A stretch of 64,000 nucleotides of DNA from Macrostomum lignano (lineage: Eukaryota), in assembly GCA_002269645.1 (NCBI GenBank), contig NIVC01003571.1, positions 26,636-90,635 on the forward strand. The letters are read 5' to 3'. The notes under the pieces were generated by a model. It was not told the origin of the DNA, ran no database searches, and saw only the letters and a list, made by a program, of their open reading frames with translations. A program made the position numbers and the translations under genes. Of the stretch, positions 19,113-58,404 are shown piece by piece; the stretch's first letter is position 1, and every line of letters begins with the position of its first letter.

Positions 19113-20023
19113 CAGACATGAACCCCATCGAGTAATGTCTGGGACTTCCTAAAACGCGGCATTCAAAAAGAGAATCCACCACAGAATGTTGTGGAGTTTC
19201 GTCATGTCATCGAAAACGCTTGACAGCAGCTTCCCCAGGACTTTCTGCGCCGCCTCATCCTTTGGAATGCCCCGCAGTCGCCGCACTTCTGTGTGCGAGG
19301 GGATCCCACACGTGTTATAACCCACCGCGATTGAAACTGCACATTGCATAAAAATGAACAAACTGCTGATTTTGTGCGACTGACGTTTATTGATTCAATC
19401 AACTTTCCCTTCCCCCGCGGCAGCTTAGTTGCGCGTTGAGGGCGGATTGCGAGTGAAAAGTTGTGATAAGTGAGAAAATTTTCATCTCCCTTGGAGGATG
19501 GAACTTTTGACTGTTTGACTGCACTTTTTATTCCGGACTGATCCCATTATTGCATCATCTAAAATAATTTGATTGCCATGCTTAATTTCCATCCAATTCG
19601 TCAAGAGACTGAAACGATTAATTCGATCATATGTGACCAAGAAAATTCTAGGTCAGTGACTTCACTTTCTGTTTAAAAATACCAGCAGTGATATACTCAT
19701 TAATAGTTCTATATTGACCGAGGACAACACGCTGCTTTCAACGAAAGATTTAGGAGGGGAGACTTTGGCCTGAAGCCCCCATTCATCCCATAGCCAGCCA
19801 AGCCCCTGAAATTTGGTAAAAAGTAGTGTAGTCAGTAGTCATTATACATGTATGGGGTATTTTCGTTGAAAATAAAAGTTTTGTGCCAATTGAGTAGAGC
19901 TCATATTCTTTTGCTCCTACATTAAGGTGCAGTTTTTTGCGGTGCCCACCCTTCCTATGCGCACTTCCCGCTTGCCAGCAGTGCCCGAAGTTGATTCTAT
20001 ACTCTTATACTCGTACATGTATA

Positions 20024-20621
20024 CACTCAGCAACAGTCAAAACCGCCACCCTACCGAGAGAGGCGACTTCTCTCTCACCTCAACTGCAAGTGACGTAACT
20101 TGCGCCACGGCGTGGCTAAAGCTGGGTGAGAGTGAATTCCAGGGTGAGAGTACAAAAGGGACTGGGGTTGGGGTTAGGGGTGCAACAGTACACGTGACAA
20201 TGGTCAGGCATATGACAGACGCTGAACGATGGCGCACTGTTGGCATGCTAGAAGTTGGTGCATCCATCAGCGCAGTTGCTCGCCAATTTGGCCGATCACG
20301 TTCAACAATTCGAGCGCTGTTAACGAAGTCCCAAGAGACTGGTAGTGTTCAGCATGCAGCCATAGGCAGCCAGCGCCATGATCTCCGCGGCTCCACAGCC
20401 AGGGCAAATCGACGTCTGCTGCGGATTGTCAGGCGAACTCCGACCGCGCCAGCAGCCACCCTGCTCTGTCTAATGTGGGGTGAAAGAAGCAGATTGCCCT
20501 CTCCTGCATTCACTCTCACCCAGCTTTAGCCACGCCGTGGCGCAAGTTACGTCACTTGCAGTTGAGGTGAGAGAGAAGTCGCCTCTCTCGGTAGGGTGGC
20601 GGTTTTGACTGTTGCTGAGTG
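20024..20621 (+). mobile_element. Tc1/mariner internal-deletion derivative
   Basis: Perfect 114-bp TIRs (20024-20137 and 20508-20621) with TA on both sides. The interior encodes a Tc1 N-terminal HTH: MTDAERWRTVGMLEVGASISAVARQFGRSRSTIRALL. Confidence 0.9.
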
Positions 20622-24200: not shown

Positions 24201-24250
24201 AGCTCCGCTGCTTGCTCCGCTGCTTGCCGCCTAGCTCTTCCCCAACAGCT
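21240..24250. repeat. 30-bp minisatellite, right arm, inverted (about 100 units)
   Basis: Reverse complement of the left-arm unit. It is the source of the 882- and 890-aa repeat ORFs. Confidence 0.95.
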
Positions 24251-27200
24251 CAGCCCCTATCCAGGATTTTAGGGAATTTACGACCAACTTGTCTGATCGG
24301 TTCCACGTTGTACACCGACAAAATAATGGTTAAAGACAGCGTGCAAGCTTCAAGACAGGGACATGTAGTTATCAACAAATCATTCTCTAGGAAGTTTGAT
24401 CGGCACAAATATAATTGGCACCAGACATATTGCTTTTGACGATGTAAAAGAGACTTGCGCCAATTCAAATGGGACGGCATATGTTTCTCAAGCAACATCT
24501 GTGAAGCGAAGTCACAGGATTTATGAGTATTGCAAGACACAGCAGTGGCAGAAAGAAATATTAAGCTTAAGGTTGTGGAGTGAGTTGTTTTTTATTCAGG
24601 CTCGTATTTTGCGTTGGTTTAGCTTAAGCCTGTAGCAGAGAAAGTGGTCAAACTCGGGGAAAGTGGAAGTTAAAAAATTACTACGGTTAGGAATTAATTG
24701 AATTCCATTATATCAAGAATTTTTATTTAAATGTTACATCTAGACTAGATCCCTTCCCTTGGTTCTATAAGGGATCCAAAGATCAAATACTAAGTTTGCT
24801 GCTCATTCTGCTTTCCGTATACCTTGCTTGAGAAGCATATGGATCAGTAGGGAGTATGGCTAGTCTCGTCTAGATCTTCAACAGCAATACTACAGCATGA
24901 CATTTTAGTGTATTTCAAGAGATTCAAACGGCCATTAGCTACGCTAGTAGCATTCAACAGCAGATTGGTTTCGACGCCACGCAATGTAAAATTATTGGCG
25001 CAATGTTACGTCAGTACATGCGGAAGTATTTGTAATGCAGAACAGCGGCAGTAGCTAAATATTGACATCCGAAGTTGAATTTTGCGACAATATTACACGC
25101 AATAAATAGCATTGACACCAAACGGTAAAAAGTAAAACACAAGAAAAGCACACGGAATTAAAAGTAAATAGTTTGCGTGGTAGGTTTGGAATTAGATCAG
25201 TGAAACAGTAAGAAGCATAAACTTTTGAATCGCGAGTACGCGATATGCACCATCACAGTTCGCAGCTGGGCAAATTATTCTGAAGAGACAACAACAAGGC
25301 AAACCGCCGGGGACTCAACAGAGTACAGTTCACAATGGAGGTGGTGTCAGATCAGTTTTCTCGGTGTGAGCTCTCTGAAGGCGGCAACAGAATTCCTAGC
25401 CGATCACCCCAGCGTCATCTAGCAAGCAATCCGCGTAGCGGCTCGCCCGGCCGTAGCCTCGGGGCCAGGGGCCCTGCATCGTGAGTAGCAGGACGTCCTG
25501 CACTGGTTGAGAACAGTAAGCCTCCGCCGAATGGTGTGGCCCGCCAGTTGAAGTCTTTGCCTGCGGAGGGTCTCGCTAGGTCGTCGCAGCAGTCTGGCAG
25601 CGCGGCGTCCTACAGGACAACTCGGATAGAGCGGAAGGCAACCCAGGCCAGGCCCCTGCGTCGCGCCAAGTCCTCCTGGACACTGGGCACAAGACTGCCG
25701 AGGTACGTGAAGCGCGTGCAGCGAGGTAGAGCCAATGCACGATCGTCGGGCATCCCAGCAGGTGATTTTGATAGGCAGCTCCGCAGGTACACATCACCTG
25801 CCTCTTCTCGATGTTCACCGCTAGCCCGACCGATGCCGCAGCTGCCACCAGGCTGTCTAGCATGCGCTGGGCTCCCTCAGCCGTAGAGGCAAACAGCTCC
25901 TGGGTTACGCCGACTCCAGATGGCGGCTGTTTGTTTGCAGCCACAGTAGGAAGCCGTCCTCATCTGTTGGCAGGGCCCTCCGTAGCACCCCATCGAGCAC
26001 CAAAACGAAAAGGTAGGCCGCAAGTGTGTCGCTCTGCAGCACCCTGAGGTCGTGTTGAACAGGTTGGACAGTACGTCAGGTGCCATTACGGCGGCGGTAG
26101 AGAGTTATGGTTGCTGCGACCAGTCGCTACGGCACGTAGAATGACCACAAGACCGATGCGAGGATATTCTGAAGAGAGGAAGGAGATAAATTCTTCTCCA
26201 CTTCTTCTGAAAAGAATAGTTAAAGTTTAATTAGCAGAGCTACGAGGTGAGGCTGGAAAGAAGAAAAGGGGGGGGGGTCTGAAGGGGAGAAGAGGCTGGG
26301 GTCTAAAGGGGAGAAGAGGGTTTGAAGGGGAAGAGAGGGTGGGATCTGTAGGGGAGGAGAGGGTGGAATCTGAAGGGGAGGAGAGGGTGGAATCTGAAGG
26401 GGAGGAGAGGGTGGGTACTGAATGGAGGAGAGGGTCAGGTCTGAAGGGGAGGAAAGGGCTGGGTCTGAAGGGGAGAAAAAGGAGCAAAGCAAAGAGGAAT
26501 AGCAAGGAGAATGGGGGACAAGGAGAATGGAGAAGGGAAATAGCAACAAGGATAGAGGAGGAAGGGAATGAAAAGGATAGAGGAGGAGGGGAAGTTCAGC
26601 AGGGAATATAAAAGAAAAAAACAGGAATAGAAGGAAGGTAAGAGAATAGCAAGGATGGGTAAGGAGAAGAATATCAAGGCTAGGGGAGAATAGCAAAGAG
26701 AAAAAGGGAGAGTGAAAGACCTTAAGCAAACTGACTTCAACTACTCAGAAGCTTCTAAAAGGAATATTTGAGCAACTATTAGCATATAAGGTAGGGCAGT
26801 TTAGCACAACTTGCCTAGTACGAGCTCGTAGATAGGTATATTAGGACTACTAGCCTTGTAGGGTACAGAGTTGTTTAGCAACTACTAGTCAGGTAGATAG
26901 AGTGGATTTGTACCTAGAAGACTAGCAGGTTGACCCGCGAAGCCTAACAGACTATAAAGTAGATTAGCACCTATAAGTCTAGACGGTAGAATGATAGGTA
27001 TTATATTTACTAGCCTAGTAGGTAGGATAGGCTACTAACCTAGTATAGTAGATAGAATCTAATCTAGGTTCATTATCCTGTTATTCCTCCTGTTATAGGA
27101 GGGTAGGAGCTGATGGCGGAGGCTAGGAGGGTAAGAGTTGGTAGAGGAGGGTAGGAGCTGGTAGAAGAGAGAAGGGAAAGTGTCGAAGGGTAGAGCAGGG

Positions 27201-36597: not shown

Positions 36598-38712
36598 AAG
36601 ACTAGCAATCTATGCCCACCCTTTGGGGTGCCAAATAAGCAAGAGACAAATTGAAACAGTTTTATTAAGTTTTCCTATTGTTACATATTAAATATGTTGA
36701 GGAAAATGTAATATACAAATCTTTTCTATACTCACAAAAGGTTATTTGGTTGCTATAATCTCTTTGAGATTTTTTTATTAGAATTATATAGCATAAAAAT
36801 TACACATTTCATGCACATTTGTACAACACAATGTAACATCCATAAGAATGCAGTGTTAAGTATTTAAACAAAGATAAGTAGACTTGCCACACAGAAAGAA
36901 AAGTTTATCTATGAAAAGAGAAAACATGGTCAGTTAAGTCATTTTTTAAATAGTAACCTAGAGATTAGTCAATTTTTTTACATACACATTGGTTAATGAC
37001 AACTTGCATTGAATTTAATTTGCGCTGAAAATTGTTGTTTAATATATTAATGCCCTACCATAACTATACATATAGAATAAACTGCATGATGTGTACTAAA
37101 ATGAACAATATTTTGTACTCCAGTGGTCCTTGAAACAGATTTTATGAAAAATTATAATGGCGACAACAAATAGATATTGATTCTTGAATCTTGATTTAAT
37201 GCGTATGCATAAAACTCTTCAAAGTTTCTTTCACCTTACATCAAATCTCCATTTTAAGTCAGGTTAATAATGCATGAACCTAGTAGCTAAATTCAGTGGT
37301 GACTGCAACTTATACAAAAACTGATATCAGCAATAAAGGACTTAAAAGGGCCTCAATTATTTCCCACTGTTGACTGTTATCTTTTATTGGTTTTATAATT
37401 TCAAAAATGTGTAGCAGCAAAAAAATATTAATTGGTGTATTTTATTATATTTTATATTTTATTATTAACACAAAAAATCCATGAGAAACAAAAAAGTAAA
37501 TTTCAGCATTTTTTATATATAATATAGTAAATTTCAGCATTTTTTATATATAATATAGTAAATGTATATTTTTGGTCAATAAATAAATAGAATTCTTGTG
37601 AACAAAGGCCGAAATAAAGAGTGAATTTTGTTAAATTAGTTTAGTACATTGACCAATAAAACAACTCTGAATATTTTAGCACAATATTTCTTTGCACACA
37701 TGCCTTGTACAAGTATGATGTTCTTGCAGAAGGCTTACCAACAATATAGCCCATTGCACAATTTATGTACATTTAATTATTTTTGTGATCTATTATATTT
37801 AATTATCTGTTTTGACATGTTTATGTTTGACACGGTGGCTGTTTTATGTACAACATGGTGGCTCCTTTGTGTTTGACATGGTGGCTCTTTAGTGTTTGTC
37901 ATGGAGCCTCTAGTGTTTGACATGGCAGCTCTTTAATGTTTTACATGGTGCCTCTTTAATGTATGACATTGTGGCTCCTTTGTGTTTGATGAACCAAAAA
38001 AAGCAAAAAAGACTCGTATTAAAATGGATTTATCATAAGGCAAAGAGCCTCTTTGCAGCAAAAATGATTAGCTACTTAAATTTGCCTAGTGCTTCTAATT
38101 CAGCATTTTAGTCATAGTTTTAATTTTCATCTTAAATAGATGACAGACAGAGAACAGACTTAGTCAAATAGCTAACCAGCACAGAAATAAAAAAATTCTT
38201 AATTCAATGCTTCATTCTTCAACGTCAACAACAGTGCTGCAGCTGCGGCTGTTGTTGTTGTTGTTGTTATTAGATGGCCCAAATGCGCCCAGGATCCATA
38301 CAGAACCTGGCCAGTGCGACCAAACCATCAGGGTAATCGGACAAGTTGCTGAGGGAGATCGGAGCTCCAATGAAGCGACGGCGGGCGTGTAGCGCCAACC
38401 GGCATGCAGCTGCGGCTGTGGTGGCAACAGAGATTTCTGCAGTCTGCCGCTATGTGGCCGCGCTGCAGGCAGAATCGGCAGAGTCCAACTGTGAAAAGAA
38501 AGCATAATAGTTTTGTAACATATATTCATTTCACACGAAATGAGTGGTCAAACAAAAACTGATTTAGTCAAAACTATCCCTCTAAACAAACTCGTAGTAC
38601 AATAAACTTACGTGCGCGCATTTCATCTCTCACAAATCTAGTCCGCGCCGAACGCGAGTGTAGCTGCAGTTGATGCTGCTGCTGTTGCGGTTGTTGTTGT
38701 TGCTGTTGCTGT

Positions 38713-39558
38713 GTGTGTGTGTGTGTGTGTGTATATATGCCACCGGTGCAGTCTAACGTTCCGCGAATCTGGTCAGGAACCAATTCCAGTAAGCAAGCGC
38801 GCTTGGCTCCTTGGCCCACAAGTCGGCGGCGTCGCCAATACCGAGCTGCTGCCTGCGCGTCCAGGTGGCCGGGCAGTCGCAGAGGTGGTCGACCGTTTCT
38901 GGCTCCAGTTTGCAGGCCCGACACAGCCCGTCGTCGGCGCGTCCGATGCGCAGGTTGTAAGCTTGAAGTTGGATCGAGTGGCCGGAGCGGAAGCGGCGCA
39001 GGCTTAGCGCTTCGGTACGATTTCCGAAGCTCGCTCGCTGCACCCTGGCTTCCCTGCCGTAGGTCCTGCGGCTCCGGTCGTGCGTGAACCTTCTCGGTAG
39101 TTGCCTCCGGAGGACTCTACTCGTGATGCTGGCGCCAACCGGCATGTTGTCCTGTGGCATGGTTGCGGCTTCACCAGCTGGCTTATCAGCTGCTTCGTTT
39201 CCGGGGAGGCCGCAGTGAGCCGGTATCCAGATCATAGCCACCTTGCGGCCGCACTCCCCGAGGTGTGCCAGCAGGTGCCGGATGTTAATGGCGGCCGGCA
39301 ACCGGGATTCGCCTGTGATGGCTTGCAGCGCGCTGCGGCTGTCAGTGGCTATGCGGGCGTGGTGCCATGGTTCGTCCAGTTTGCACAGCCAGTCAATAGC
39401 CGCCAGCAGGGCGACTAGCTCGGCAGCGGTCGAGGAGCAGGGCCGCCCCGCTGGAATGCGCAGCGTGGTGATATTGTCAGAGAGCGCAGCAGTGAGCGGC
39501 GGCGTGACCTTGTCTATGATGATGCCAGCCCCTCCGCTGCCGTCTTTGAGAACCGCTC
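38713..39558 (-). mobile_element. 5'-truncated LINE B (RNase H plus C-terminal zinc-binding region)
   Basis: RNase H motifs DGS, CSSTAAEL, TDSRSAL, WIPAHCGLPGNEAAD, followed by CRAC..ETVDHLCDCP. (CA)n tail. The 12-bp TSD tgctgttgctgt sits at 38701-38712 and 39559-39570. Confidence 0.9.
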
Positions 39559-39632
39559 TGCTGTTGCTGTTGTTGCTCCTCTTGCTGTTGTTGTTGTTGT
39601 TGTTGTTGTTGTTGAGTGCGGAGTGCAGCCGT

Positions 39633-42600
39633 CTAGAGCGGGGTCCAGTCGATCCACTCCAGGAGCCGCGCCACCAGGTTCCCATCGGCTAGGTCTTTCA
39701 GATCGCAAATGCTGTTCTGTCTTCGGGCGACATCGATCGCAGGGCAGTGGACCAGGTGGAATTGGTCTACCTCGAGCCCCCAAAGCCTGCACTCGGCCAG
39801 CTGAGCTTTGCCGATGCGCTTAGCGTAGTAGGCCGAGGAGGGGCAGTGTCCAGCTCTCACCTGCGCAACGAGGACTTGCTCACGCCGGCTGCCGTTATGG
39901 TGCGTGATGCGTCCTTGGTAAGTCTCCTTCAGATGGCCGGTCAGGTCCGGAAGGTACTCGAGACGGCGGTAGATAAACCGCTTGGCTGCTTCGAGCGAGA
40001 TGGCCACTTGGGCTTGATCCAGAAGAGCTGCGGCTTTGGCCTCGCGATCGACGAACTCGTTACCAGCCACGCCAGCATGGCCGGGAATCCACTGGATCGT
40101 GAGAACGTAACGGCCAGCTGCTTGCCGAAGAAGGGCCTTCAGGTCTTTGAGTAGCGCGTTAGTGGTGGGCCGGTCGGCTATCAGTGCTCTGACGGCCGCC
40201 TGGCTATCGGTGAGGAGGGTGGCGGTGTCAACGTCCTGCTGGATGACATCCACGACGGCATCTCGGAGCGCGCGGAGCTCGGTTTCGAAGGAGCTGCACT
40301 ATCTGCCCGCTGCAGAGTGGCCGCCCCGGATGATCGTGCCCATCTCCTGGTCAAACAGAATCCAGGCGGCGCCGCCGTTGGCGGTGCCACCCGAAGCGGA
40401 GCCGTCCGTGAAGTAGCAGGTACTGGGCAGGCGTTATCGGAAGGTGTCGGCGATGATCGGATCGTGGGTGTGCTGACTGTCGGTTTTACGGAGCGGTCTC
40501 ACCAGTTGCGGATAGAGCCTCAGCCGGTCCGAGCCGCTGAGTGTGTCCCACGGCGGGGCTCTGACCCAGGCTCCCGGGAGAAGGCTATGTGGGAGGATCT
40601 CGTTGAGCACTGAGTGGGCTTGTTCGTGGAGGCCACGGTTGGCTTTGAGCCGGGTGGGGGTCCTGAGTTCATACCTGGACCTCCAGGGGTCCGCCTCAGG
40701 CCGCCGGAGCGCCTTTTCGACGGTGACCAGCGCTCGTCGTTTGGCCTCCAGGCTGATGGGCACACAATCGGCCTCACGGTAGATGGCCACGCTAGAAGTC
40801 GAGCTTGGTAGACCAGAGACAAGACTCAGAGCGACTTTTTGGGCTTTGTCCAGGTCATTGAGGCGAGTCTGAGAGAGCCAGGGTATCCAGGCTGCAGCCG
40901 CATGCCAAACCACAGACTCCACCACGGCTTTATACACCGTCCTAAGCGTGGCGCGGTCCCACCCCCATTCGCGATGCGACAGTGCACGCAGGACAGCACA
41001 ACGACGGCGCAGTTTGGTGGCAACTTCGTCGGACTGCCGCTTGAAGAGCAGGCCGCTGTCGATCCAGACACCCAGGTAGCGCAGCTCCTGCCTGGTTGGG
41101 AGTTGCTGGCCTCGGATGCACAGGTTGAGGGTATGGTCGCGGTCCCTGCGGTCTCTCGAGAAGATACAGCATTCAGTTTTGAGGGGATTGAGATCGATAC
41201 GGAGATCTGTGGCCCAGGCGTCGATGCGATCGATGGCCAGTTGAAGGCGCTCCGCAATCTGCTGGATGTTGCTGCCCGAGGCCCAGACGCCCAGGTCGTC
41301 AGCAAAGCCGGCGTAGTTGACATCTGGGACCAGGGAGTCTGCCCAGTCGTTAATGTACAGGAGGAAGAGCACCGGCGAGCACACTGCCCCCTGCGGCACC
41401 CCCTCCTTAAGCGGCTTCCATTTGCCGATCGTGTCGCCCACGCGGACGGCAATCTGGCGCCCCTCCAGGAAGCTGGCAGACCAGTGCACCATGCGACCCG
41501 GGACTCCCTCATCCATGATACGGGCAAGGAGGCGGGTACGCCAGACCCGGTCGAAGGCGCGGGAGCAGTCAAGGGTGACAGCGATCGTTTTGCGAGGCGG
41601 GCGTTGTTCCCAGTGGTCTTGGATTTCCTAGACCAGACGCGCCACTTGTTCTTCGCAGCTATGCCCTCTCTGAAAACCAGCTTGCCACGGTTGCAGCGTG
41701 TTGTTGAGTTCGATCCAGTGCATGAGCCGGTCCATCACAATGCACTCCATGATTTGAACACAGATGGAAGTGAGACTAACAGGCCGGAAGCTGCTGCAGT
41801 TGGCTGGGTCTTTGCCCTCTTTCAAAAGTGGGACGATCACCGCCTTCTTCCAGACTTCCGGGCAGTGCCCTAGGGACCAGCACCGATTAAAGACCGTGAG
41901 CCAGGCTGTGAGCCACGAGTCCGGCAGGTGTCTGAAGAAGGCCTGCAATGTCTGAAGAATGCAAGCTTTGGCCGCCTTACTCATACGAAAGCAGAGGCGT
42001 TGGATTTGCTGCTTGACAGTGCCTTTGTTGAGCCCATTGCTATCGTCTTCGAGCTGGGCCTGGTAGCTGTTCCAGTCAGCTTTCTGCCAGGCCCAGGTGA
42101 GACAAATCTTCTGGTCGGTGCTAGCGCGGTCGCTATCCACAGTGATGAGAATGGGTTTGTGGTCAGAGCCCAGTTCGTCAAGGGCCTATCACGAGCAGAG
42201 GTCGTCGAGGCCGGCGCTAGCGAGGCTGATATTGGGGGCACTCTCTCCACCGTCGCGGCGATCGAGACCGTCGCGGCGATCGAGACAGGTGAGGGAGCCC
42301 GAGTTGAGGACACAATACCCACTACTGTCACACCACTCCAACAGGGCTTTGGCTTGTTCGGCGCCCTCGGGCCCCTGGCCAGGCAGACTACCCGAGGTCG
42401 TGTGATGGAGATTAAAGTCGCCAGCAATAATCTCGCGCTGGTGCGGCTTCAGCCAGAGATCGATGTCCGGGTGCTCCCGGCAGTCGGCGCCAGCATTGCG
42501 CCTGATGGGCGGCCGGTAAATGTTAGTGAGCACGAGACGCTTTTTGACACTAAGATTGATCACGATGCGGCAGCCTTCCACCGTGCCTCCACTCCAGCCT

Positions 42601-43470
42601 TTGAGCCGCCGGAAGGGGATTTCTTGGCGGATGAGCGTGAGGAGACCTCCTCCCTTGTACGTCTCGCTGGAACGTAGCGTTCGTCGGTCTTTTCTCACGG
42701 TGGTAAAGCCGGGGATCTTTGGCGTGCGGGAGACGGAGTCAAGCTTAGATTCTTGGATCATGACAACATCAACTTTGAGGCGTTGGACCAGCTCCTCCAG
42801 TTCTCCCATTTTGTTTCGGATGCCGTCCGCATTCCATTGCAGGACCTTGAGGCCCTTGTTATTGGCAGGTCCTTCTTTCCGTCCGCGGTGCGTTTCGTTG
42901 TGGGCCATGGGGTCGGCTTCTGGCAAGGAATGCGTAGCTCCACTGGTAGTGAGGGCTTCGGTACAGAACCGACACCGCCAGCGGCCCCTGCGGACTTCTT
43001 GCTTAATCTGTTCTCTGGTGGCTTCGGTGCATGCATTGTGGAAAAAGGCCTCACAGGTGTTACAGCAGGCAATCACCGTCGACACCAGGATGGTCTTCTT
43101 GCACTTGGCGCAGTTAGGCTTTTCTTCTTTGATCCTCGCAAGCAGGGTGAGTCTCCGATCCTCGGCCGGTGACTCCGCCTGGACGGGAGTGCCTTGCTGA
43201 GCAGTGGCCTCGGTGTCTTGTCCCGGCGGCTCCGGGGATGAGACTGGCCCACGTGAGCAGTCGGAACAAGTCCAGGTGTTCTCGCGCACGGCGCGGTCCG
43301 AGGCCCAACGGCTCAACCCAGAGCAGATTCTTTGGAGATGAAAACCGCGGTTGCATAGCCGACAGACCAGCGCCCTGTCACGGAGCGGCTTGCCGCAGCA
43401 GGCCTTGCCATAGTGTGACCGGGGGTCCTGGGTTGGTTTCAATGTTGCCGGCCCTGAATAAGCGCAGCTT
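39633..43470 (-). pseudogene. LINE A polyprotein, with five in-frame stops and one frameshift
   Basis: ORFs 42189-43613, 41628-42140, 40434-41516 and 39633-40253 share one frame. APE motifs QWNADG, IQESK, GDFN, SDH. RT motifs RPVSLTS, GVPQG, FADD, YLG. RNase H motifs FTDGS, TDSQAA, WIPGHAGVAGNE. Stops near 42189, 42186, 41628, 40434 and 40299. Confidence 0.9.
43423..43470 (-). other. 2A-like ribosome-skipping peptide KLRLFRAGNIETNPG-P
   Basis: Matches D(V/I)ExNPGP except for N in place of D. It lies at the N-terminus of an APE-type LINE ORF. Confidence 0.75.
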
Positions 43471-43583
43471 GGGAAGGTGGTGGGCCCAACTGCCACCCTC
43501 GACCGCCGGGAAGCCATCGGCGGGCTGCAGCTTCCGTTGACACAAACTTCTTCTAGCCGATGGGACACAGGGTGTCCAAGGTT

Positions 43584-43690
43584 TAGGCGCTCTTTGATAT
43601 CCCATAGGGACACCTCCCCCCCGCGACGAAGACGCGGCGCCTAGTAGGGGCTGGAGAAGCTTCTCCAGGTCGGCTGTAAAGGCCGGCGGG
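43584..43690 (-). ncRNA. Predicted HDV-like self-cleaving ribozyme at the LINE A 5' end
   Basis: Folded by eye: P2 uaggcgc/gcgccua, P3 gcg/cgc, L3 ucuucgu, P1.1 cu/ag, P4 guguccc-uau-gggauau, J4/2 caaa. P1 is imperfect (cccgcc against a G run). Confidence 0.55.
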
Positions 43691-43941
43691 TCCTCTTGCT
43701 GTTGCTGCTGTTGCTGCATTGGCCAGGTTGCCGGTGGGAGCATGGGGTGTGGGTAACGGGTTGGGATAGGGCATCCCAGTAGATGGGGGTGGGGGATAAA
43801 ATAGACTGGCAAATGGATAAGGATAGGGATAGGGATAGGGATATGGATAGGGATTGGGATAACTTAGGTAGGGATTACTTAGGTAGGGATTCATAGCGTA
43901 GTAGGAATTCGAAATTTACTGGAAAAAAAAACTGGCCTGGG

Positions 43942-44515
43942 CTTGCTTATCAGTTGTGTGAATATTGATATTCATGAAGCGCCTATTGTTAATTGCAGTC
44001 CACTCATCAATTGTAAGTGAATAATGCTCACATTGCATCTTTCTGGCATTCAAATCTGGCATTCAAATGCTTTTTCGAGTAATAGGCTACAATTGAGCTT
44101 TAGATATACAAATTCTTCTTAGGATTCAAAATTGGCCAGAAAGATTATGTGATCAAAGCAGTTAGCTAATGGCCCTTGGAATGGCCCATGAGTACTATGT
44201 CCCAGAACTGGCTTTTGAAGCAGCAGTTGGCACTGGCAGACTTTTATCTCCAAGGGCCAGATAAAGAATCCAGCTCATGGCTACAAACTAGATAAGAGTT
44301 GAAAGGAGATAAGATAAAAGATAAAAGATAAAAGAGGAGAGATAAGAGAAAAAGAGAAAAGGAGAGAGAATGTAAAATAAATTATAGAAGATAGAGAAGG
44401 GAGAAGAAAGAAAAGATAAAAGAGTAGAGATGAAAGAGGAGAAAGGAGAGATTAGAAACTGTCTAACAGTTTCATTCCTGATTGAGTTACAGAGTTGAGA
44501 CTTTATATTTAGATA
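43942..44515. repeat. Direct repeat copy 2 of 36039-36597 (hAT 5' fragment)
   Basis: Sequence identity visible by eye. Confidence 0.9.
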
Positions 44516-45168: not shown

Positions 45169-48100
45169 ATGTCGCAGCAGCCGGATGCCCTGGCTGCTGT
45201 CACCGCAGTAGCTAATGATGATAATGAGGACGATGCGGATGTGCAATATCTGGTTTCATTCTACGCCAATTTAGATCGCGCCGGCGGGCGCAAGCTGATG
45301 CGCGTGCTGTCGCAGCAGGCGGAGGCGGCCGTGTCCGCGGCTGATTCGCAGGCTGACGACTGCGATGCCAGCCAAGGAGAGGAGGATGCTGCCGACTGTA
45401 TCGATGCCGATGAGGAAGACAATCAACCAGGTGATGCCCCACCTGCTACCGACATTTCCGATGACGACGACATCTGGTACTTGTTCGAAGATGACGGCCG
45501 GCCGAGAAAGCTGAGCCGTCGACAGAAAAAGCATCGCCGAATGGCGGCTGGCAGCGAATTGTCGGATGGCGTCGACGCTTCTGTCCGGTCTGGTCACGTG
45601 ACGTACAGCGATGTCGACTCGGCGCCGCCGAAGCCAAGCCTGACTGTAAAGTTTCTGCACGTCAGGCAGACCAGGGCCGGCCTGTGGTCGCCGCTGTCTC
45701 TGATGGACCTCTGCCTGCAGCGGCTTAGCAATCGGCCTGGTCAGAAGCGGCCAGTTCAGCTGCCGCGGCCGCTGCTTCGCCGACTTCAACGAGAGCGTCT
45801 GCTCCGTCGGCTGCGCGAGCTGACTCGCCAGTGGTGGCGCGAACGGGCCCAGGATCTCAATCAAGTGATGCAAATGCGCAACGTTGACGTAGCGCAGGCG
45901 TTGCGCAGTCACTGTGGTCGTAATGCAGAAGAGATTTTCCTGTCCCGCTCTCTGTACAGCGCCTCGCATTACAATTGTCAGCATGAAACAGTGGTTCACT
46001 CGCAGGGCGCCTATGCAGCCGAGGCATACCGTATGCCGGCCCTGCTGCGGGCTTGGAGCTCGCGCGGCGACACCTGCCGCTACCTGCCTATTTTTCATCA
46101 GCCGCGGTTTTATTGCACCAGTAACTACGTGTTGAAGCTTGCATTTTCTTGCTTTCCAATAGCCTCGCTGGCCTGTCTGGCTGCTCTGGAGTTCGACTGG
46201 CGCCGCAGGTGCATCCGATCAGAAGGTGTTTGTCACGAGCTGGCGAATCACTACGGAAAGCATGCCTTGCCCTATTGTTTATGGGCTAGAGGCCTTGTTG
46301 ACGAGGCCTGCTCAGCGTTCCTAGCCACTTCAGACTTGTTAGGGCCTGGTATTGATCGAGCATCTATGCTGAATGAGGTTGCTAGAATGTATGCTATGGT
46401 GAGTTACTCATGTGAGGTGCAATAGGGCTGATTGGTAGCTGCTGTAAGACAGTATCTAGTGAACCACAGGTTAGTAGCCCCCGGAAGACACGTTAATAGC
46501 CTCTTTAAGACATTTTAGTAGCTAATGGAAGACAGGTTAGTAGCTAATGGAAGACAGGTTAGTAGCTAATGGAAGACAGGTTAGTAGCTAATGGAAGACA
46601 GGTTAGTAGCGACTAGAAGACAGGCTAGTAGCCACTGGACCTAGAGGACATCTCAATAGCGACTGGGTGACAGGTTAGTAGCCAAAGGACATGATGTCAC
46701 TAGGCCAAAGAACCCTCTACAGCAGTTAATCTGCAATTTTAACCAGTCAAAATATGCCTGAAATCGCCAGGTGGACATGCCGCAGGATGCCGCATCTTTC
46801 TATTTGATGGCCCTTCGCGAACTCATGGCTGCTGGCGCGCTGTCCGACTCCCTGAGCTTTGAGCCGGCTGACGATCGCCTAATCCGCATTGGCGCTCACT
46901 TCCAACAATTGGCATTGTGCGCCACCGTATTCGACGAAGGCCAATTCAAAACCGGTTGTGGGGCCGTTGCTAGGCAACGCTGGCTGCAAGTATTTACACA
47001 GAGATTCGCCTGGAAACCGGAGCCTGGACCGAGTGAGCCAGCTTGGGCACCGTTTATTGACACGGAGGCCATTCAGGCGGCTATTCAGCTCGGCAACCTG
47101 TCCGACGGCCAGGTGGATGTGGATAGCTACGCCGCTTCGATTGAGCAGTCGGGCGCCGGGGTCAGCCAGCAACAGCAGCAACAGCAACGCGAGGAGCGGC
47201 CGCCTCAGCAACCGACTGCGCGGATAGAGTGCGGCCTGCGTGCCCTTATTTCGCTTGTATTCGTTCACTGCGGTGATGGCGTGAGTGTTTTTTAAATAGA
47301 GCATTATAGCATTAAAATGTTCACATAAATAGTGCCTTTTAGAGATTCGGAAATATCCGGGATTACAACGGCTTTAGAGATTGTGAATGTCCAGGGGGTC
47401 ACACAATGGCTTTAGATAGGAAACTAGCCAGGGTGGGTCACACAATGGCTTTAGATAGGAAACTAGCCAGGGTGGGTCACGCAATAGCTTTAGATAGGAA
47501 ACTAGCCAGGGTGGGTCACACAATGGCTTTAGATAGGAAACTAGCCAGGGTGGGTCACACAATGGCTTTAGATAGGAAACTAGCCAGGGTGGGTCACGCA
47601 ATAGCTTTAGATAGGAAACTAGCCAGGGTGGGTCACACAATGGCTTTAGATAGGAAACTAGCCAGGGTGGGTCACGCAATAGCTTTAGATAGGAAACTAG
47701 CCAGGGTGGGTTACGCAATAGCTTTAGATAGGAAACTAGCCAGGGTGGGTCACACAATGGCTTTAGATAGGAAACTAGCCAGGGTGGGTCACGCAATAGC
47801 TTTAGATAGGAAACTAGCCAGGGTGGGTCACACAATGGCTTTAGATAGGAAACTAGCCAGGGTGGGTCACGCAATAGCTTTAGATAGGAAACTAGCCAGG
47901 GTGGGTCACGCAATAGCTTTAGATAGAAAACTAGCCAGGGTGGGTCACACAATGGCTTTTTAGAATCGAGAAGCAATACAGAGAAAAAAACAAAACTTAT
48001 TACCCACAACTGCCAGGCTGACTGGTGCCGGGAGACCCTGGTCCACCTGGACAGGCTGCACGAGTTCACCAACCTCACCAGCATCTACCAGTCGATGCTG

Positions 48101-51100: not shown

Positions 51101-52622
51101 AGTGGACACGAAGATGGCAGCGACGAGGACACGAAGACAGACGTCGCTAAAGTGGACGCAGCGGCGGCTTCAGAAGATGAAATTCCTACTAGCAATAATC
51201 TAGCTTATTCTCGCATCATTCTGGGCATCCAGTGGCTGACTGACTGCGGTCGCCTTCTGGCTGTGTTCTTGCCGGATCGGCTGGCTCTGCTGAATCCCGA
51301 CACATTCGATGCCGTGCCCATAGCTGACGACTGTCGAAATTTTGTTGAACTGTGCGGCAACCAGGCTGTTGGAGATGATCTCTATGGATTTCGAGTGCCT
51401 TCGGTGCGTGGGCGTCGGCTGTCTTAGTTTTGTTTAGCTTGAGTAGTCTGGAGCTGAGTGACCTCGAGCTAGAGTAGTCTTTATTTGTAGCAATTACCTT
51501 AAGATAGAATCAGATTAACAATGAATATAACATTTAGATTATTGCAAAGTGTGATTATTAGCTTGTCGCCTATGGAGATTGGCTTGTCACCTATGAATAT
51601 TAGCTTCTCGCCTATAGAAATTAGCTCGTCGCCTATAGAAACATTTAGATTATTGCAAAGTGTGATTATTAGCTTGTCGCCTATGGAGATTGGCTTGTCA
51701 CCTATGAATATTAGCTTCTCGCCTATAGAAATTAGCTCGTCGCCTATAGAAATTAGCTCGTCGCCTATAGAGATTAGCTTGTCGCCTATAGAGATTAGCT
51801 TCTCGCCTATGGAGATTAGCTTGTCGCTTATAGAGATTAGCATATCGCCTATAGAGATTAGCTTCTCGCCTATGGAGATTAGCTTCTCGCCTATGGAGAT
51901 TAGCTTGTCGCCTATAGAGATTAGCTTGTCGCCTATAGAGATTAGCTTGTCGCCTATAGAGATTAACTAGAGGTCTATAGAGCTGTTTTTTCCAGTGCGA
52001 TGTGCTCATTAATAAGTAATTAGTAATCGCACAGCTTATATAAGAAATTCCCCACCCTTGCCATGGCCAGGTGCCAAACGTACACGCACTGAACTGGCAG
52101 GCTGGCCAGACCCTGCAGGCCCAGAGTGAGATTCGCTGCTACCGCACCCTGGAGGAGCAGCCATTAGCCAATGGCAGCGGATTCCGCACCGTCCTGTCAG
52201 TTCAAGGCAACGTATACGTGTTAGATACGCCTGCTAACGATGAGGCAGGTCATCGAGTTCGAGTTGTCTGCGCTGCCGCTGTCCCCGGCCAGGCGCGCGA
52301 AGCCAGATGCGTGCCGAATGTCGGCTTGCTAGTGTGCGCCGCTCCCCTAGCCCAGGTGTTCGGCAATGCCGACGCCGAATCGGACGCCGCATCGGATGAG
52401 CAGCCGCTCCGCCAGGAGGTGCTGTACCTGTTTAATTGGTCCGGCCAGCTGCTCAGCTTCCTGCCTGGCCTTGGCGCCGGTCCGCACAGTTTCTATTGCG
52501 AGCCGGACTCGCTTCCTGGTCGGGTGTACTTTAGAGACGGCTACGGAGCCGTTTGCTGCGCTGAGCTGGCCGAGTCAGAGCAGCGCCGGCTGGCCGACCG
52601 GGCCGGTGCTTTGGCTTCCTAG
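45169..52622 (+). CDS. Uncharacterised 6-exon protein, about 1432 aa (acidic N-terminus, BC-box/SOCS-like motif, helical TPR-like region)
   Basis: Exons 45169-46398, 46771-47280, 48017-48610, 49101-49503, 50394-51403 and 52071-52622. All introns are GT-AG and all phases are compatible. The total of 4299 nt equals 1433 codons including the stop. Confidence 0.8.
46515..46630. repeat. 22-bp minisatellite, intron 1
   Basis: Unit tagtagctaatggaagacaggt, about 5 copies. Confidence 0.85.
47404..47959. repeat. 39-bp minisatellite, intron 2 (about 14 copies)
   Basis: Unit caat(g/a)gctttagataggaaactagccagggtgggtcac(a/g). Confidence 0.95.
48640..49000. repeat. Degenerate minisatellite of about 33 bp, intron 3
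   Basis: caggacaggctagagattctggttgctatg-like units. Confidence 0.7.
49650..50060. repeat. 16-bp minisatellite, intron 4
   Basis: Unit ctgtc(t/c)agctgtgtgc. Confidence 0.9.
51530..51965. repeat. 21-bp minisatellite, intron 5
   Basis: Unit gcctat(a/g)gagattagctt(g/c)tc, with an internal duplication of about 111 bp. Confidence 0.9.
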
Positions 52623-53179
52623 TAGTATCGCGTGACTAAATTGTGCCTAGAGAAGGCCTAGGCCTAGAGGAGACTAATCCTTCTAACAGATAAATCGCCG
52701 CGAAATTCTCGTTGTGGCGCTTTACATACAGTATAAATAGCAAAATAGCCAAATATTACACATATGAAATTTATATAATGAGCTCTCATAGACTTTCTAC
52801 TAATTGTAGAAATATAAGAAAAATGCTTAAAATGTATTCAATACTCTACTATTAGTAAAAACACTGGTTTTTTACCTTAGTCAAGACACAGCAAGCGTAC
52901 ATTACGCTCGTACTTCGTTGTTGCGCTCCGGGTATTATGTCGATTTAATTTAATATAATCTCTATCTTTGATAGGCTACATGCATGCTGTTAAAGGCTTA
53001 TAATTGATTAACTTGGCGGGCTACGGTAGACCCCCAGTCTGTAGCCCGTCTACCCTAGCTCCACTTGCCCCATAGCATATTGCACTGGAGTGACAGCTCC
53101 TACCGACATTGCTCTATTGCTTAATGCCCACCTAACACAAGTGACCCTAATTATTTCTCAGCCAGTCAGGCCGATCGGC

Positions 53180-53830
53180 ATGCGAGTGCTAAATGAGAAA
53201 ACACTGCAGCGGCTCTGTCAGCGCCGTCGATGCAGTCGCGAAGGCTACCTACGGATGCGGCGAGTGACAGCCAGCGGCGGCGGCAGCGAGAAGCGGTACT
53301 ATTTCAAACTGTGCGGCAACTTTCTCTACTACCTGGATAAGCCGCAGGATGATCAGCCGGTTGGCGCCCTGCTGCTAGCCGGACACATGGTTGAACCGTC
53401 GGACAGTCGGGACCAGGCTGCCACATTCTGCCTGTCCTATCAGGACGCTCCAACCGTTTATCATCTGACCGCCTCGTCTGCCACCGAGGCCGCCCTGTGG
53501 ATGCATTCTATCATCGGAGCCGCGCACGAATGCGCACTGTCTATGGCTGATACCCTGCGAGACCAGCTGCGAGCTATCACTCTAACATCCGATTGTCAGA
53601 ATCAGCCTGCTACTAATAGTAGTTTACTAATGACGGTTGGCGCAGGGGGCGATGTAGCCAGCGGCAGAGTGAACAGTAATATCGCATCTATGATGTCAAC
53701 GGTCAGTCTGGCAACTAGGCAATCGGAAACTTCTGCATTTTGGTTGAAAGAATTCTCTGCGGTGCTGGACCAGCGATTGGAGACTGTCTATCAGCTAATG
53801 CTGGCGTCCTGCGATTCGCGCAGCGGCTAA
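53180..53830 (+). CDS. PH-domain protein, PLEKHJ1/PHETA (Sesquipedalian)-like, 216 aa
   Basis: MRVLNEKTLQRL..EGYL..FKLCGNFLYY..PVGALLL..YHLTASS..WM resembles, from memory, the PLEKHJ1 motifs MRYNEKELQAL and NFLFYF..PVGALLL. Confidence 0.75.
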   Translation: MRVLNEKTLQRLCQRRRCSREGYLRMRRVTASGGGSEKRYYFKLCGNFLYYLDKPQDDQPVGALLLAGHMVEPSDSRDQAATFCLSYQDAPTVYHLTASSATEAALWMHSIIGAAHECALSMADTLRDQLRAITLTSDCQNQPATNSSLLMTVGAGGDVASGRVNSNIASMMSTVSLATRQSETSAFWLKEFSAVLDQRLETVYQLMLASCDSRSG

Positions 53831-54696: not shown

Positions 54697-57600
54697 GCTG
54701 CCAAGGCACAGCAACTGGGCAAAAACGGCAGCCAAAACGGCGGCGGCGGCGGCGGCGGCGCCGACAGCGGCCTGTGCAGCGAGCCGAGCAGTAGCAGCGG
54801 CGAGTTCGCGGCCGAGCTTGCGGCCGTCCGCAGCTGGCGCAACGGTGCCGGCTACCAGTCTGACGATGATGAGCTGGACTCGCGCACCCCGGACGAAGCC
54901 GAGAGCGCGGCGGACTGGCTCGAACAGACCGGCTCACCGCTGCTGGCCGACATCGCTCGCCGACTATTGCAATCGTCGCCAATGTCAACGTCGACCGAGT
55001 CAGCGTCGACGGCATCGTCAAACGCCATCGGCGATCATCAAGCTGGGGCCGATTTAAGCGCCGCAGATTCGGCACTAGACGCGCACTATCAAAGAATGAG
55101 CAGGAAGCAGCTCAATGCCGTGATGAAGCGGATCGCTACTTTGAAAGCTAAACGAGGCCTGGCCTCTAGGCAGGATGTTAGACAGCTGTTCAGCGAGGCT
55201 GGGGTCGCCGGGACAGCAGCGGCAACTTCGGGCGTTGCCGACGCGGACACCGGATCGGAGGACACCGGCGACTCGGAGGACGATCTGCTGCAAGTGACGG
55301 GACGAACTGCAGCGCCTGTTGCCGGGGCAACGCCACTACACGCAGATCAGGTAATTATCATACAGACCGTGTCGCTGTCTGTCACACCTGGCCGCCTTGC
55401 CAGAGGATCAGGGGCTTATTTTATTGTCATCTTTTATTAATTTCAATTTGACAAGTTACAATTGATCGGCCTTCAAAAATTGTTTTAATTCCACACGGAC
55501 CACACGCTACTACTCGTATCACTGTTTTTCTCTGTCCTCTCCTTCACAGGCTCCATCTGTAAGCAGCAGCGGTGCTACACCTGTTGCCACGTCGGGCCTT
55601 GAGCAATACCCGACCTTCGTACTGCCCAACAACCGCCTGGGCAATGCCAGCATATTCGATTTCAGCGAGCCAGATAGGCAGCAGATTCGAGCTCTGGCCC
55701 ACCTGGAGCTGGCCGCCCTGTTCGATAAATACGACTGCGATCCGGCGTTTAGGAAGCCGTCGTCACGCGGCCGGTCGGCCTCGCGGCGCTCTGTTGTTGC
55801 CAGCTGTTTCGGCGTGCCGCTTGACCAGCTGGTTGCTAAGGAGAGCGGCAGCTCCAGTAGCGACGGGGTGCCTCAGCTGGTCCGCTGGATTGTCGGTCAG
55901 CTTGAACGGCCGGAAGCGCTGCGCACCGAAGGCCTGTTCCGCGTCCCCGGCTCGCTGCAGAGAATCCGCCAGGCCAGGGAGCGGGCCGAGTCAGCCGGCA
56001 TCAAGGCGCTGATGGCCGACACCGAGCAGCAGCATCAGCGTCTGACCGCTGACTGGCACGACCTAGCCGGCCTGTTGAAGGTCTTCCTGCGTGAGCTGCC
56101 CGAGCCGCTGACGTTCAACAGCCTATGCGGATTTCTATTTAAAACTGCGCTGTATTCAGCACGATATGGACAGATTGTTAGGCCTTAATCTGCTTGTGCT
56201 GCTGTTGCCAACGCCTAATTGTAGCACGCTGCGCCTGATGGTCGACTTGTTTGCTAAGGTGCGCGTCTGTCTCATGAAAATGATTTGCGCATTTCTTGAT
56301 TGTTTTTTTTTCAACCCTAAGTCTTAGTGTAGAGTTTTTTTTCCACATATCGTGATTTGAAATTGGGTCTCTATATTCAACCACCCCAAGTTTTCTTTGC
56401 CTGTTTTCTCTCCCTTACCCCCTGCCCCAGCTATTCTGTCCCTTACCCCCTGCCCCAGCTATTCTCTCCCTTACCCCCTGCCCCAGCTATTCTCTCCCTT
56501 ACCCCCTGCCCCAGCTTTTCTCTCCCTTACCCCCTGCCCCAGCTATTCTCTCCCTTACCCCCTGCCCCAGCTATTCTCTTCCTTACCCCCTGCCCCAGCT
56601 ATTCTCTCCCTTACCCCCTGCCCCAGCTATTCTCTCCCTTACCCCCTGCCCCAGCTATTCTCTCCCTACTCCCTGCCCCAGCTATTCTCTATCTTACCCG
56701 CTCCTTCCCTAGCCCATCGGCGCGAAGTCCTGTGTAAGTTGAGCTTCAGTTTAATCAGTATGATATTCGATCTCCCACACACAATTCACCCTCTGTCAGG
56801 TAATCGAGCAGCACAAGCACAATCGAATGAATCTGAAAGCCATAGCAACCGTCATGGCGCCAAATTTATTCGCCATTCAATCTTCGAAGAAAGCGCAACG
56901 AGAAGGCGCCAATCTGTTGGCTGAGACTGGCAATCTAATCGGATTAGTTGAGATGCTCATTAAATATCGCACCATAGTGTGGAGCGTGCCAGAGTTTCTA
57001 ATTAAACAGTTGCGCGAGCCGCCTAATAAATTAAGCCAGCTTGCCAGCACCAGCGGCAGCGGCGGCGCCAGCAGCGCCAAGAAGGCGGCCAAACTGTTGC
57101 GCAAGCAGGCAGCCGCTGCTGCAGCAAAAACGCCCGTATCCTCTTTGGCAGCTGCAGTTGTTGACAGTCCGGTGTTTAACAGCTCAACTTCTGCGACATC
57201 GATCCAAAACCAGCAGGTGAGTTGTCGCATGTTGTCCCATCCGATACTTCAGCTGTCCCTTCCGATACTTCAGCTGTCCCTTCCGATACTTCAGCTGTCC
57301 CATCCGATACTTCAGTTGTCCCATCCGATACTTCAGCTGTCCCTTCCGATACTTCAGCTGTCCCTTCCGATACTTCAGCTGTCCCATCCGATACTTCAGT
57401 TGTCCCATCCGATACTTCAGCTGTCCCTTCCGATACTTCAGCTGTCCCATCCGATACTTCAGCTGTCCCATCCGATACTTCAGCTGTCCCTTCCGATACT
57501 TCAGCTGTCCCATCCGATACTTCAGCTGTCCCATCCGATACTTCAGCTGTCCCTTCCGATACTTCAGCTGTCCCATCCGATACTTCAGCTGTCCCATCCG

Positions 57601-58404
57601 ATACTTCAGCTGTCCCATCCGATACTTCAGCTGTCCCATCCGATACTTCAGCTGTCCCATCCGATACTCCAGCTGTCCCTTCCGATACTTCAGCTGTCCC
57701 ATCCGATACTTCAGCTGTCCCATCCGATACTTCAGCTGTCCCTTCCGATACTTCAGCTGTCCCATCCGATACTCCAGCTGTCCCTTCCGATACTTCAGCT
57801 GTCCCATCCAATACTCCAGCTGTCCCTTCCGATACTTCAGCTGTCCCATCCGATACTTCAGCTGTCCATCCGATACTTCAGCTGTCTCATCCGATACTTC
57901 AGCTGCCCCATCCAATACATCAGCTGTCTTATCTGATCCTAATTCAGTAATCTAATCCCCTGTTTTTAGTGACCCCTTTTAGATCTATAAATAGATCTAA
58001 ACTTATCTGTTCATCAGATCCTTCAACAGCCCGTCAGATTTTAGTAGCCTCTCAGATCCTTCAGTAGCCTCCCAAATTCACTAACAGCCTTTAGTAAAAG
58101 TAGGCCGCTTGCCCACTCCTGCACACTTCGGCGCTAATCAAGCAACTTCCCATACCTGACCACTTCACCCCCTCTCACCAAGGTAAGCATCAGTGTTCAC
58201 CAGGCCAGCACCAACCGCAGCCAGCTGGTTCCAATCTCGCCGTCCACCACCGCTGCCGAAGTTCTTCACGGGCTGGGCTGCGACCCCTCCACCACCTCCC
58301 TGTACGAGGTTGGCGGCAACATCAATGAGCGCCGGCTGCCCGGTAACACACAGATTTATTACCTGCTCAAGATTAATCCCACCTGCTCTTGGGCTGTTAA
58401 GTGA
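54697..58404 (+). CDS. RhoGAP of the ARHGAP18/28/40 (Conundrum) family; first exon not identified; one apparent +1 frameshift
   Basis: Exons 54697-55350, 55550-56258, 56800-57216 and 58183-58404. Motifs TPDE..DWL..TG, FGVPL, EGLFRVPG, LLKVFLRELPEP, MNLKAIATVMAPNLF and LYEVGGNINER. Confidence 0.8.
56400..56695. repeat. 28-bp minisatellite in a RhoGAP intron (about 10 copies)
   Basis: Unit ccctgccccagctattctctcccttacc. Confidence 0.9.
57232..57920. repeat. 21-bp minisatellite in a RhoGAP intron (about 32 copies)
   Basis: Unit ctgtccc(a/t)tccgatacttcag. Confidence 0.95.

Follow-up and report, generated by a model that had tools for sequence, protein, structure and literature searches.

A CAG/CAA repeat tract of Macrostomum lignano occupied by two related LINEs, and a possible insertion bias of their lineage towards triplet repeats

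On the minus strand of a 64,000-nucleotide stretch of the Macrostomum lignano genome (assembly GCA_002269645.1, contig NIVC01003571.1, positions 26,636 to 90,635 of the forward strand; in the following termed the window), two retrotransposons of the non-LTR type (lacking long terminal repeats), the long interspersed nuclear elements (LINEs) A and B, are found within one imperfect CAG/CAA tract. They occupy positions 38701 to 43704 of the window, coordinates that represent the outer edges of the target-site duplications (TSDs) of B and A, respectively. The locus raises the question of how two insertions came to lie so close together in a short triplet repeat. Their clustering would most likely result from an insertion bias of the LINE lineage.

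The CAG/CAA tract and its insertions

Joining the flanks rebuilds a host tract of about 87 bp, an imperfect CAG/CAA repeat that reads ATG(CAR)7 GAGGAG (CAR)8 CCG (CAR)4 CAT CAA CTG CAG CTA CAC... at the empty site (CAR, CAA or CAG). The TSD of A, TCCTCTTGCTGTTG (sense CAACAGCAAGAGGA), occurs exactly twice within 38000–44000, namely at the two borders of the element (Table 1). As its first CAA is ambiguous with the tail, the duplication measures between 11 and 14 bp, and it can be considered genuine because the non-repeat motif GAGGA is included. The presence of GAGGA in this TSD, together with repeat sequence on both sides of A, also indicates that the tract is older than the insertion of A. 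The TSD of B, TGCTGTTGCTGT, could measure 9 to 12 bp and consists only of in-phase CAA/CAG units, so that a 12-bp match would be expected by chance in about 1 of 16 cases, making it weaker, albeit plausible, evidence. Target deletions were not seen at A or B. A sequence-only reading of this locus had assigned a 14-bp TSD and a (CAA)n tail to A, a 12-bp TSD and a (CA)n tail to B, and the same orientation to both, with gcaaca alone separating the target sites. This layout is borne out by the exact 14-mer pair and the (CAA)8–9 tail, by the 12-mer pair and (CA)10, and by the spacer at 39571–39576, with the TSD of B being the less firmly established of the two.

The open reading frame (ORF) of the 5′-truncated LINE B is intact as far as its stop codon at 38753–38755, and the element ends in TATATA(CA)10 at 38713–38738, the (CA)10 corresponding to (TG)10 at 38713–38732 on the plus strand. 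About 210 bp further downstream of the A and B insertions, a GC-rich block contains a third remnant, fragment C. It holds a CCHC motif and the peptide ...LSNLSDYPDGLVALARFCMDPGRIWAI, which matches the last approximately 35 residues of nine reverse transcriptase (RT) homologues, near the C-terminus in each, at E values from 3e-5 to 2e-2 in a small database; P0082, P0133, P0018, P0029, P0017 and P0080 are among the homologues matched. The stop codons TAATAA of C (38267–38272) are directly followed by a (CAA)5 tail (38252–38266) and then by CAGCCGCAGCTGCAGCAC (38231–38251), a CAG-like stretch, while a TSD for this fragment was not found. The orientation of A, B and C is identical (minus strand, head-to-tail), and the three represent independent, now dead insertions of related APE-type LINEs.

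Previously, A and B had been taken for unrelated elements with clearly different RNase H sequences. The sequences are indeed different, as the DNA of A and B is not alignable and the proteins are 33% identical across RNase H and the C-terminal part. At an E value of 3e-19 (BLASTP), however, and with both proteins aligning throughout with one common set of homologues, the claim of unrelatedness is contradicted. The subgroups differ, A going with P0002, P0003, P0004 and P0005 and B with P0085, P0063, P0072 and P0021, the latter four being its nearest relatives at 34–40% identity. A and B fall within a single superfamily of LINEs whose one ORF encodes a predicted 2A leader, PHD finger, APE endonuclease, RT, RNase H and CCHC motif. 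A search with the RT of A retrieved 51,634 RT homologues at E ≤ 1e-3, of which the best is a Macrostomum lignano UniRef protein (60% identity) and the next ones reach 40–44%; apart from the Macrostomum lignano entry, the homologues show at most 44% identity and derive from metagenome or SRA contigs. The C-terminus of A gave no match to protein databases, and other copies of A or B were not found in the 64-kb window outside 38700–43700 (tblastn, 13 queries).

Table 1. Positions of the LINE insertions, their parts and the remainders of the target tract in the window.
Feature	Position	Strand	Basis
Upstream tract remainder, ATG CAG CAA CAG CAG, 5′ of LINE A	43705–43719	−	read from sequence
LINE A TSD, 5′ copy, sense CAACAGCAAGAGGA	43691–43704	−	exact 14-mer
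LINE A, near-full-length decayed single-ORF LINE, 4.1 kb	39591–43690	−	TSDs, domains, tblastn with intact homologues
Predicted 2A-like ribosome-skipping motif LFRAGNIETNPGP, ending the N-terminal leader of A	43423–43461	−	ORF 43378–43812; homology to P0040
Second Cys-rich finger of A, directly after 2A	~43250–43397	−	translation
PHD finger of A	42963–43112	−	Pfam PF00628, E 1.1e-5
APE-type endonuclease domain of A	42297–42842	−	Pfam PF03372 at 3.6e-10, PF14529
RT domain of A	41061–41810	−	Pfam PF00078, split over two ORF pieces
RNase H domain of A	40023–40418	−	Pfam PF00075, alignment, translation
CCHC motif of A	~39744–39851	−	translation
Stop codon of A	39633–39635	−	translation
3′ untranslated region (UTR) of A, 18 nt	39615–39632	−	sequence
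(CAA)8 tail of A ((TTG)8 on plus strand; 9 units counting the first TSD CAA)	39591–39614	−	sequence
LINE A TSD, 3′ copy	39577–39590	−	exact 14-mer
Spacer GCAACA (plus strand TGTTGC), 6 bp between the target sites of A and B	39571–39576	−	sequence
LINE B TSD, 5′ copy, sense ACAGCAACAGCA	39559–39570	−	low-complexity, weaker support
LINE B, 5′-truncated, 0.85 kb, RNase H and CCHC C-terminus	38713–39558	−	Pfam RNase_H, 4.3e-8
LINE B TSD, 3′ copy	38701–38712	−	sequence
Downstream tract remainder, ...CAA CAA CCG CAA CAG CAG CAG CAT CAA CTG CAG CTA CAC	38660–38700	−	sequence
LINE fragment C, 5′-truncated, frame-shifted C-terminus, CRFCLQRGHIAADC ... LSNLSDYPDGLVALARFCMDPGRIWAI	~38252–38490	−	matches to C-termini of homologues

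Tails and insertion flanks among relatives

Relatives of A and B were collected from contigs encoding RT homologues and from one metagenome scan with C-terminal alignment, and their 3′ ends were surveyed. The relatives are 27–44% identical. (CAA)n tails are present in A, C and 14 distinct relatives (L046/L047 counted once). The arrangement seen in A, a short 3′ UTR followed by (CAA)n, recurs in L005, L006 and L007, which of the relatives whose 3′ end can be read are the three closest to A, in L004 with a (CAA)5 tail, in L088 and L089 of the B-like subgroup, and in L009, L035, L038, L046/L047, L063, L075, L090, L091 and L092. As (CAA)n recurs across relatives, the tail belongs to the element and is a trait of the lineage. 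A (CA)12 tail was read in L001, for which a TSD was not found.

By a strict rule, 5 of 14 3′ flanks (relatives and window) are of the CAG/CAA type (binomial P = 3e-11), namely the tract at A, CGA(CAG)6 at L038, (CAG)9(CGG)4 at L075, (CAG)4CAACAGCAGCAACAA... at L035 and (GAC)3–4 followed by (CAA)4 at L063. Admitting the looser triplet-repeat cases C and L046 results in 5–7 of 14; L006 is marginal, and the 3′ ends of L091 and L092 show a compound tail. Among the four defined 5′ flanks, three are of the same type (binomial P = 2e-8), that is, the CAG/CAA tract at A, (CAG)12 directly upstream of the full-length 2A element L003 and (CAA)6 between the AT-rich flank and the GC-rich element L014, versus a unique flank with a clean 12-bp TSD, ATTGATTTTCGA, at L004. 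For comparison, a run of at least four CAR units starts within 45 nt of only 0.17% of positions in a background sample of 1.2 Mb of strand positions, comprising all fetched loci and the window, a value that is conservative because LINE tails are included in the count. Moreover, the CAR strand is the element's sense strand in every CAG/CAA-type case. Two families, L035 with L075 and L038 with L046/L047, are each represented by two independent 5′-truncated copies sharing 3′ UTR and a (CAA)2–4 tail, with a different CAG-type tract at each copy. On balance, these findings favour the view that the (CAA)n-tailed 2A-LINE lineage prefers CAG/CAA-type triplet repeats.

Several points weigh against this preference. 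The flank-counting rules were set after the data had been seen, and the relatives, at the low identities given above, are not the same families as A and B. L004, a full-length element with a (CAA)5 tail, has its TSD in unique DNA, the 3′ flanks of L007 and L009 are likewise unique, and L090 adjoins a (GA)n microsatellite. For the truncated metagenome copies L035, L038, L047, L063 and L075, the 5′ junctions could not be pinned down, and with these junctions undefined the (CAA)n(CAG)n runs could be heterogeneous tails instead of target. Within the 64-kb window, the sole other CAG/CAA run of at least four units (47167–47187, plus strand) is LINE-free. The association is a bias, not strict site specificity. 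Accordingly, the earlier proposal that these families prefer CAA/CAG repeats holds with respect to the enrichment at the relatives' flanks, always on the sense strand, and has to be given up with respect to strict specificity, given the unique flanks of L004, L007 and L009. Enrichment and strand bias are observed among the relatives, from which we infer a preference of families A and B themselves. The present locus by itself comprises three dead copies, and the pattern among distant relatives is suggestive. Many Ga03075xx loci have CAG/CAA tracts lying upstream of RNase H by about 4 kb; these were also considered as 5′ junctions and rejected, since they are conserved segments in the interior of another family, one that is more distant.

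Possible routes into the tract

Target-primed reverse transcription uses the nicked bottom strand as a primer at the 3′ end of the RNA. By this process, A at full length and B in 5′-truncated form would have entered one pre-existing CAG/CAA tract, leaving TSDs of 11–14 bp and 9–12 bp, respectively, 6 bp apart. The bottom strand of such a tract is (CTG/TTG)n which, once nicked, could anneal to a (CAA)n RNA tail over many bases, so that nicks in CAG/CAA tracts would be extended preferentially. Compared with the complement of (CAA)n, the primer at A (...CTCTTGCTGTTG-3′) pairs at 9 of its last 12 bases, including the terminal five, with each CTG unit costing one C·A mismatch per triplet against the tail. 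The restriction of the tracts to the sense strand fits tail-primer pairing, because pairing predicts that strand. To the points against the preference must be added that the primer at B (...TGCTGTTGCTGT-3′) pairs with (CA)n only at its terminal three bases and at 6 of 12 overall, and that tail-primer pairing in L004 amounts to about 1 nt. With only three terminal nucleotides paired, tail pairing does not explain B. Extended pairing is possible and plausibly favoured for CAA-tailed elements in CAG/CAA tracts, and it is not required. Tail-target pairing, initially put forward as perhaps underlying the preference, thus agrees with the 9 of 12 bases at A and the sense-strand bias, while failing for B with 3 nt and L004 with about 1 nt. 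Both the pairing step and any contribution of endonuclease or PHD recognition are steps that we infer.

It is possible, though rather unlikely, that specificity is determined by protein, with the APE endonuclease, perhaps together with the PHD fingers, nicking a CAG/CAA motif such as TTGCTG^TTG on the bottom strand and pairing playing a minor role, as in the R1 clade. The (CA)n-tailed B landed in the same tract as A, and L090 adjoins (GA)n despite its CAA tail, two observations in favour of this view. Moreover, the bottom-strand nicks of A and B can both be written as TTGCTG^TTG within the ambiguity of the TSD ends, for which reason endonuclease recognition remains a rival or a contributor. 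In contrast, the nick in L004, the one relative whose target is completely defined, was made at CAAT^CGCG within unique DNA, and tail type and flank type co-vary across the relatives.

Coincidence or passive accumulation in a repeat-rich LINE graveyard, or a partly reversed link with LINE tails seeding or extending CAA-type microsatellites, appears improbable. The association of Drosophila Waldo-A/B with CA repeats has been attributed to passive accumulation, and LINE tails are described as giving birth to microsatellites (PMC3812793). The window, too, contains a large inverted duplication and abounds in minisatellites and transposon ORFs. Nevertheless, two TSD-bounded insertions lie 6 bp apart inside 87 bp, the TSD and both flanks of A show that the tract pre-existed, and CAA tails cannot yield pure (CAG)n runs. 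Besides, independent relatives in other organisms share both the association and the strand bias. Break-driven insertion, in which CAG/CTG hairpins break and LINE cDNA is captured at the lesions independently of endonuclease, is very improbable, since the established instability of CAG/CTG-type repeats and the occurrence of several tail types at repeats (A, B and L090) are opposed by TSDs of 12–14 bp matching the 12-bp TSD of L004 at a unique site, by the lack of target deletions at A or B and by a strict strand bias unexpected from random breaks.

In the rebuilt empty site, the ORF holding the tract comprises only about 88 codons, no Pfam domain was found on the ORF with the leader of A and its upstream flank, and no domain or homologue supports a gene at the tract. 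The phase-keeping interruptions say nothing on coding, as point substitutions always keep the triplet phase. A host-gene model with a polyglutamine (polyQ) exon, a GTAAGT donor at about 38612 and a last exon at 38212–38490 was rejected because this last exon is LINE fragment C. A coding polyQ exon is therefore unsupported. What had been described as one CAA/CAG polyQ tract is indeed a shared CAG/CAA tract, with polyQ being merely a reading frame and not a demonstrated exon, and the further suggestion of polyQ exons as an insertion hotspot has no support, given the short rebuilt ORF, the downstream exon being fragment C and the coding-looking polyQ at 47167–47187 being unoccupied. The latter run lies inside a coding-looking ORF at 46771–47295 (...GVSQQQQQQQREE..., ...SQQQQQQQREE...). 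A 21-mer, CAGCAACAGCAGCAACAGCAA, is identical at 47167–47187 (plus strand) and 43696–43716 (minus strand, 5′ flank of A), with GAGGAG close behind in both; the pair was considered as a duplicated exon and rejected, as no similarity extends beyond the 21-mer.

It would also be conceivable, though quite doubtful, that 2A leader and CAG/CAA targeting form one strategy, in which sense landing in transcribed polyQ- or polyalanine-coding tracts would allow translation as an in-frame extension of the host ORF or transcript, with 2A releasing the LINE protein from any host peptide ahead of it. Hints in this direction are that the 2A frame of A, read back through the Q-frame of the host, stays open for 143 codons and that those of L003, L014, L090 and L091 are open for 94 to about 200 codons upstream, the leaders of these four lacking an ATG or having one too near 2A to support skipping. 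On the other hand, L004 possesses an in-frame 5′ UTR stop along with an ATG of its own, A also brings its own ATG, 60 codons ahead of NPGP, the frame of L003 reads (CAG)12 as GCA and not CAG, and in GC-rich leaders long open frames are likely to arise by chance.

Element structure, known LINEs and surroundings

According to tblastn with intact homologues, LINE A consists in essence of a single frame running from 43397 to 39633, interrupted by five in-frame stops (42189–91, 42186–88, 41628–30, 40434–36 and 40299–301), one frameshift immediately past the N-terminal leader and 2A, and an 18-bp tandem duplication at 42249–42286. The three stops alignable to intact relatives (42189–91, 41628–30 and 40299–301) replace W or Q codons and for this reason look like C>T or G>A transitions. 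The leader spans 43691 down to about 43423 and ends in LFRAGNIETNPGP, a predicted 2A-like skipping motif (AGNIETNPGP) in which D has changed to N in this decayed copy. It is not a chance occurrence, since this region shows 46% identity to its 2A counterpart in homologue P0040 and N-terminal 2A motifs recur in the homologues. Among the top 150 RT homologues, 14 bear such a motif, which in most of them reads G-D-[VI]-E-x-NPGP and precedes a C-x2-C finger, and with L008 and L014 the total amounts to 16 intact relatives having the motif ahead of a Cys-rich finger. The 2A-bearing homologues are single ORFs of 1250–1680 aa with the order PHD, APE, RT and RNase H. In A itself, the 850 nt 5′ of APE hold only leader, 2A and fingers of the PHD type, all sharing one frame with APE-RT-RNase H. 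Among LINEs, the clades R1, R2, RTE, Ingi and LOA are known to have self-cleaving 5′ ribozymes; for 38000–44500, no Rfam match to a 5′ ribozyme of a known family was obtained at E ≤ 1. One relative with the 2A-PHD-APE-RT-RNase H layout, P0098 (JGI contig), additionally has, placed between RT and RNase H, an OTU-like cysteine protease domain (Pfam 4.5e-9). Just upstream of A, 43933–44085 (minus strand) shows a weak match, interrupted by a stop, to the APE portion of two RT homologues (small-database E value of 5e-5) and may be an older LINE remnant.

Single-ORF elements with an N-terminal 2A-like peptide and the order APE-RT-RNase H are known from Ingi/L1Tc and mollusc Ingi-clade LINEs of the I group (PMC3708506; RNase H clades listed in PMC4640811). 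In A, B and their relatives, the Pfam domains likewise show APE-RT and then RNase H within one ORF, an I-group trait, and a predicted N-terminal 2A-like peptide, the Ingi-clade trait of L1Tc, ingi and Aplysia Ingi, is found in A and 16 relatives. The TSDs of trypanosome ingi/L1Tc, about 12 bp long, match the 12–14 bp of A and B. Trypanosome ingi/L1Tc end in poly(A) tails and are not known to carry PHD fingers, whereas the elements described here have (CAA)n or (CA)n tails and one or two PHD fingers before APE. LINEs of the I group, comprising Ingi, I, Nimb, LOA, R1, Tad1 and Outcast, feature RNase H (PMC4640811). Odon et al. (2013, PMC3708506) described the succession of 2A, PHD and APE in LINEs of the Crack, CR1, Rex1, L2 and Ingi clades. 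Crack, CR1, Rex1 and L2 share an identical N-terminal layout with the present elements and usually have no ORF1, but they lack RNase H, and neither a CAG/CAA association nor a (CAA)n tail is reported for them in the accessible portion of that article (PMC3708506). Compared by domain layout, the elements structurally resemble Ingi-type I-group LINEs with an added 2A-PHD leader.

Waldo and Mino of the R1 clade, which are specific for (ACAY)n and (AC)n microsatellites in Anopheles and earwig, likewise are APE-type elements located in microsatellites, with a 3′ end resembling the target repeat (PMC3812793). The (AC)n target of Mino also resembles the (CA)n tail of B. In contrast to the gag-like ORF1 with CCHC knuckles plus ORF2 of the R1 clade, however, the present elements consist of one ORF with 2A leader, PHD fingers and RNase H, and while Waldo and Mino have strict (ACAY)n or (AC)n targets, CAG/CAA tracts are found here, together with a relative, L004, in unique DNA. 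A strict microsatellite specificity of the Waldo/Mino type, earlier cited as a known example, is not supported, considering also the unique flanks of L007 and L009. In a PDB sequence search with the endonuclease, only L1 ORF2p was matched, not R1Bm or TRAS1. Other LINEs specific to a matching microsatellite are Dong of the R4 clade ((TAA)n), Kibi/Koshi ((TC)n and (TTC)n) and Togen ((TG)n) (PMC3812793, PMC4640811). They are similar in their simple-repeat 3′ ends and differ in endonuclease type or clade, targets and strict specificity, Dong and Togen having a restriction-like endonuclease. A LINE preferring CAG/CAA is not reported in the literature searched, an incomplete body. If the bias is true, it would establish a new target class, the CAG/CAA trinucleotide, polyglutamine-encoding repeat, in a different LINE lineage characterized by single ORF, 2A leader and RNase H. 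It would also provide a natural system in which the parts played by tail-primer pairing and by endonuclease specificity during target-primed reverse transcription could be told apart, and would mean that triplet repeats of invertebrate genomes carrying such elements are exposed to a mutational hazard or else offer a safe harbour.

The window as a whole is unusually rich in tandem repeats. A large inverted duplication at 7592–31134, with arms up to 100% identical (for example, 12563–14624 versus 24214–26275 and 17006–18481 versus 24611–26086), may be either a true palindrome or an artefact of the assembly and is densely filled with 30-bp minisatellites and G-rich hexamer (GGGCTA-like) minisatellites. 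Inside it, an ORF at 19927–20529 (plus strand) with a Tc3/paired-type helix-turn-helix is probably the N-terminus of a Tc1/mariner-like transposase. Adjacent ORFs at 3598–5367 (plus strand) encoding zinc fingers of the PHD and FLYWCH types as well as a MULE transposase domain probably represent the remnant of a Mutator-like DNA transposon. An uninterrupted 418-codon ORF at 45169–46425 (plus strand) shows no Pfam domain and no homologue in a collection of 5.8 billion proteins, and an ORF at 53090–53830 (plus strand) with a PH domain (Pfam 9e-11) is possibly a host gene exon. Further minisatellite arrays are located at 47279–48097, 51557–52024, 56350–56723 and 57086–57994, with units of 39, 21, 28 and 21 bp, respectively, and 96–99% identity between units.

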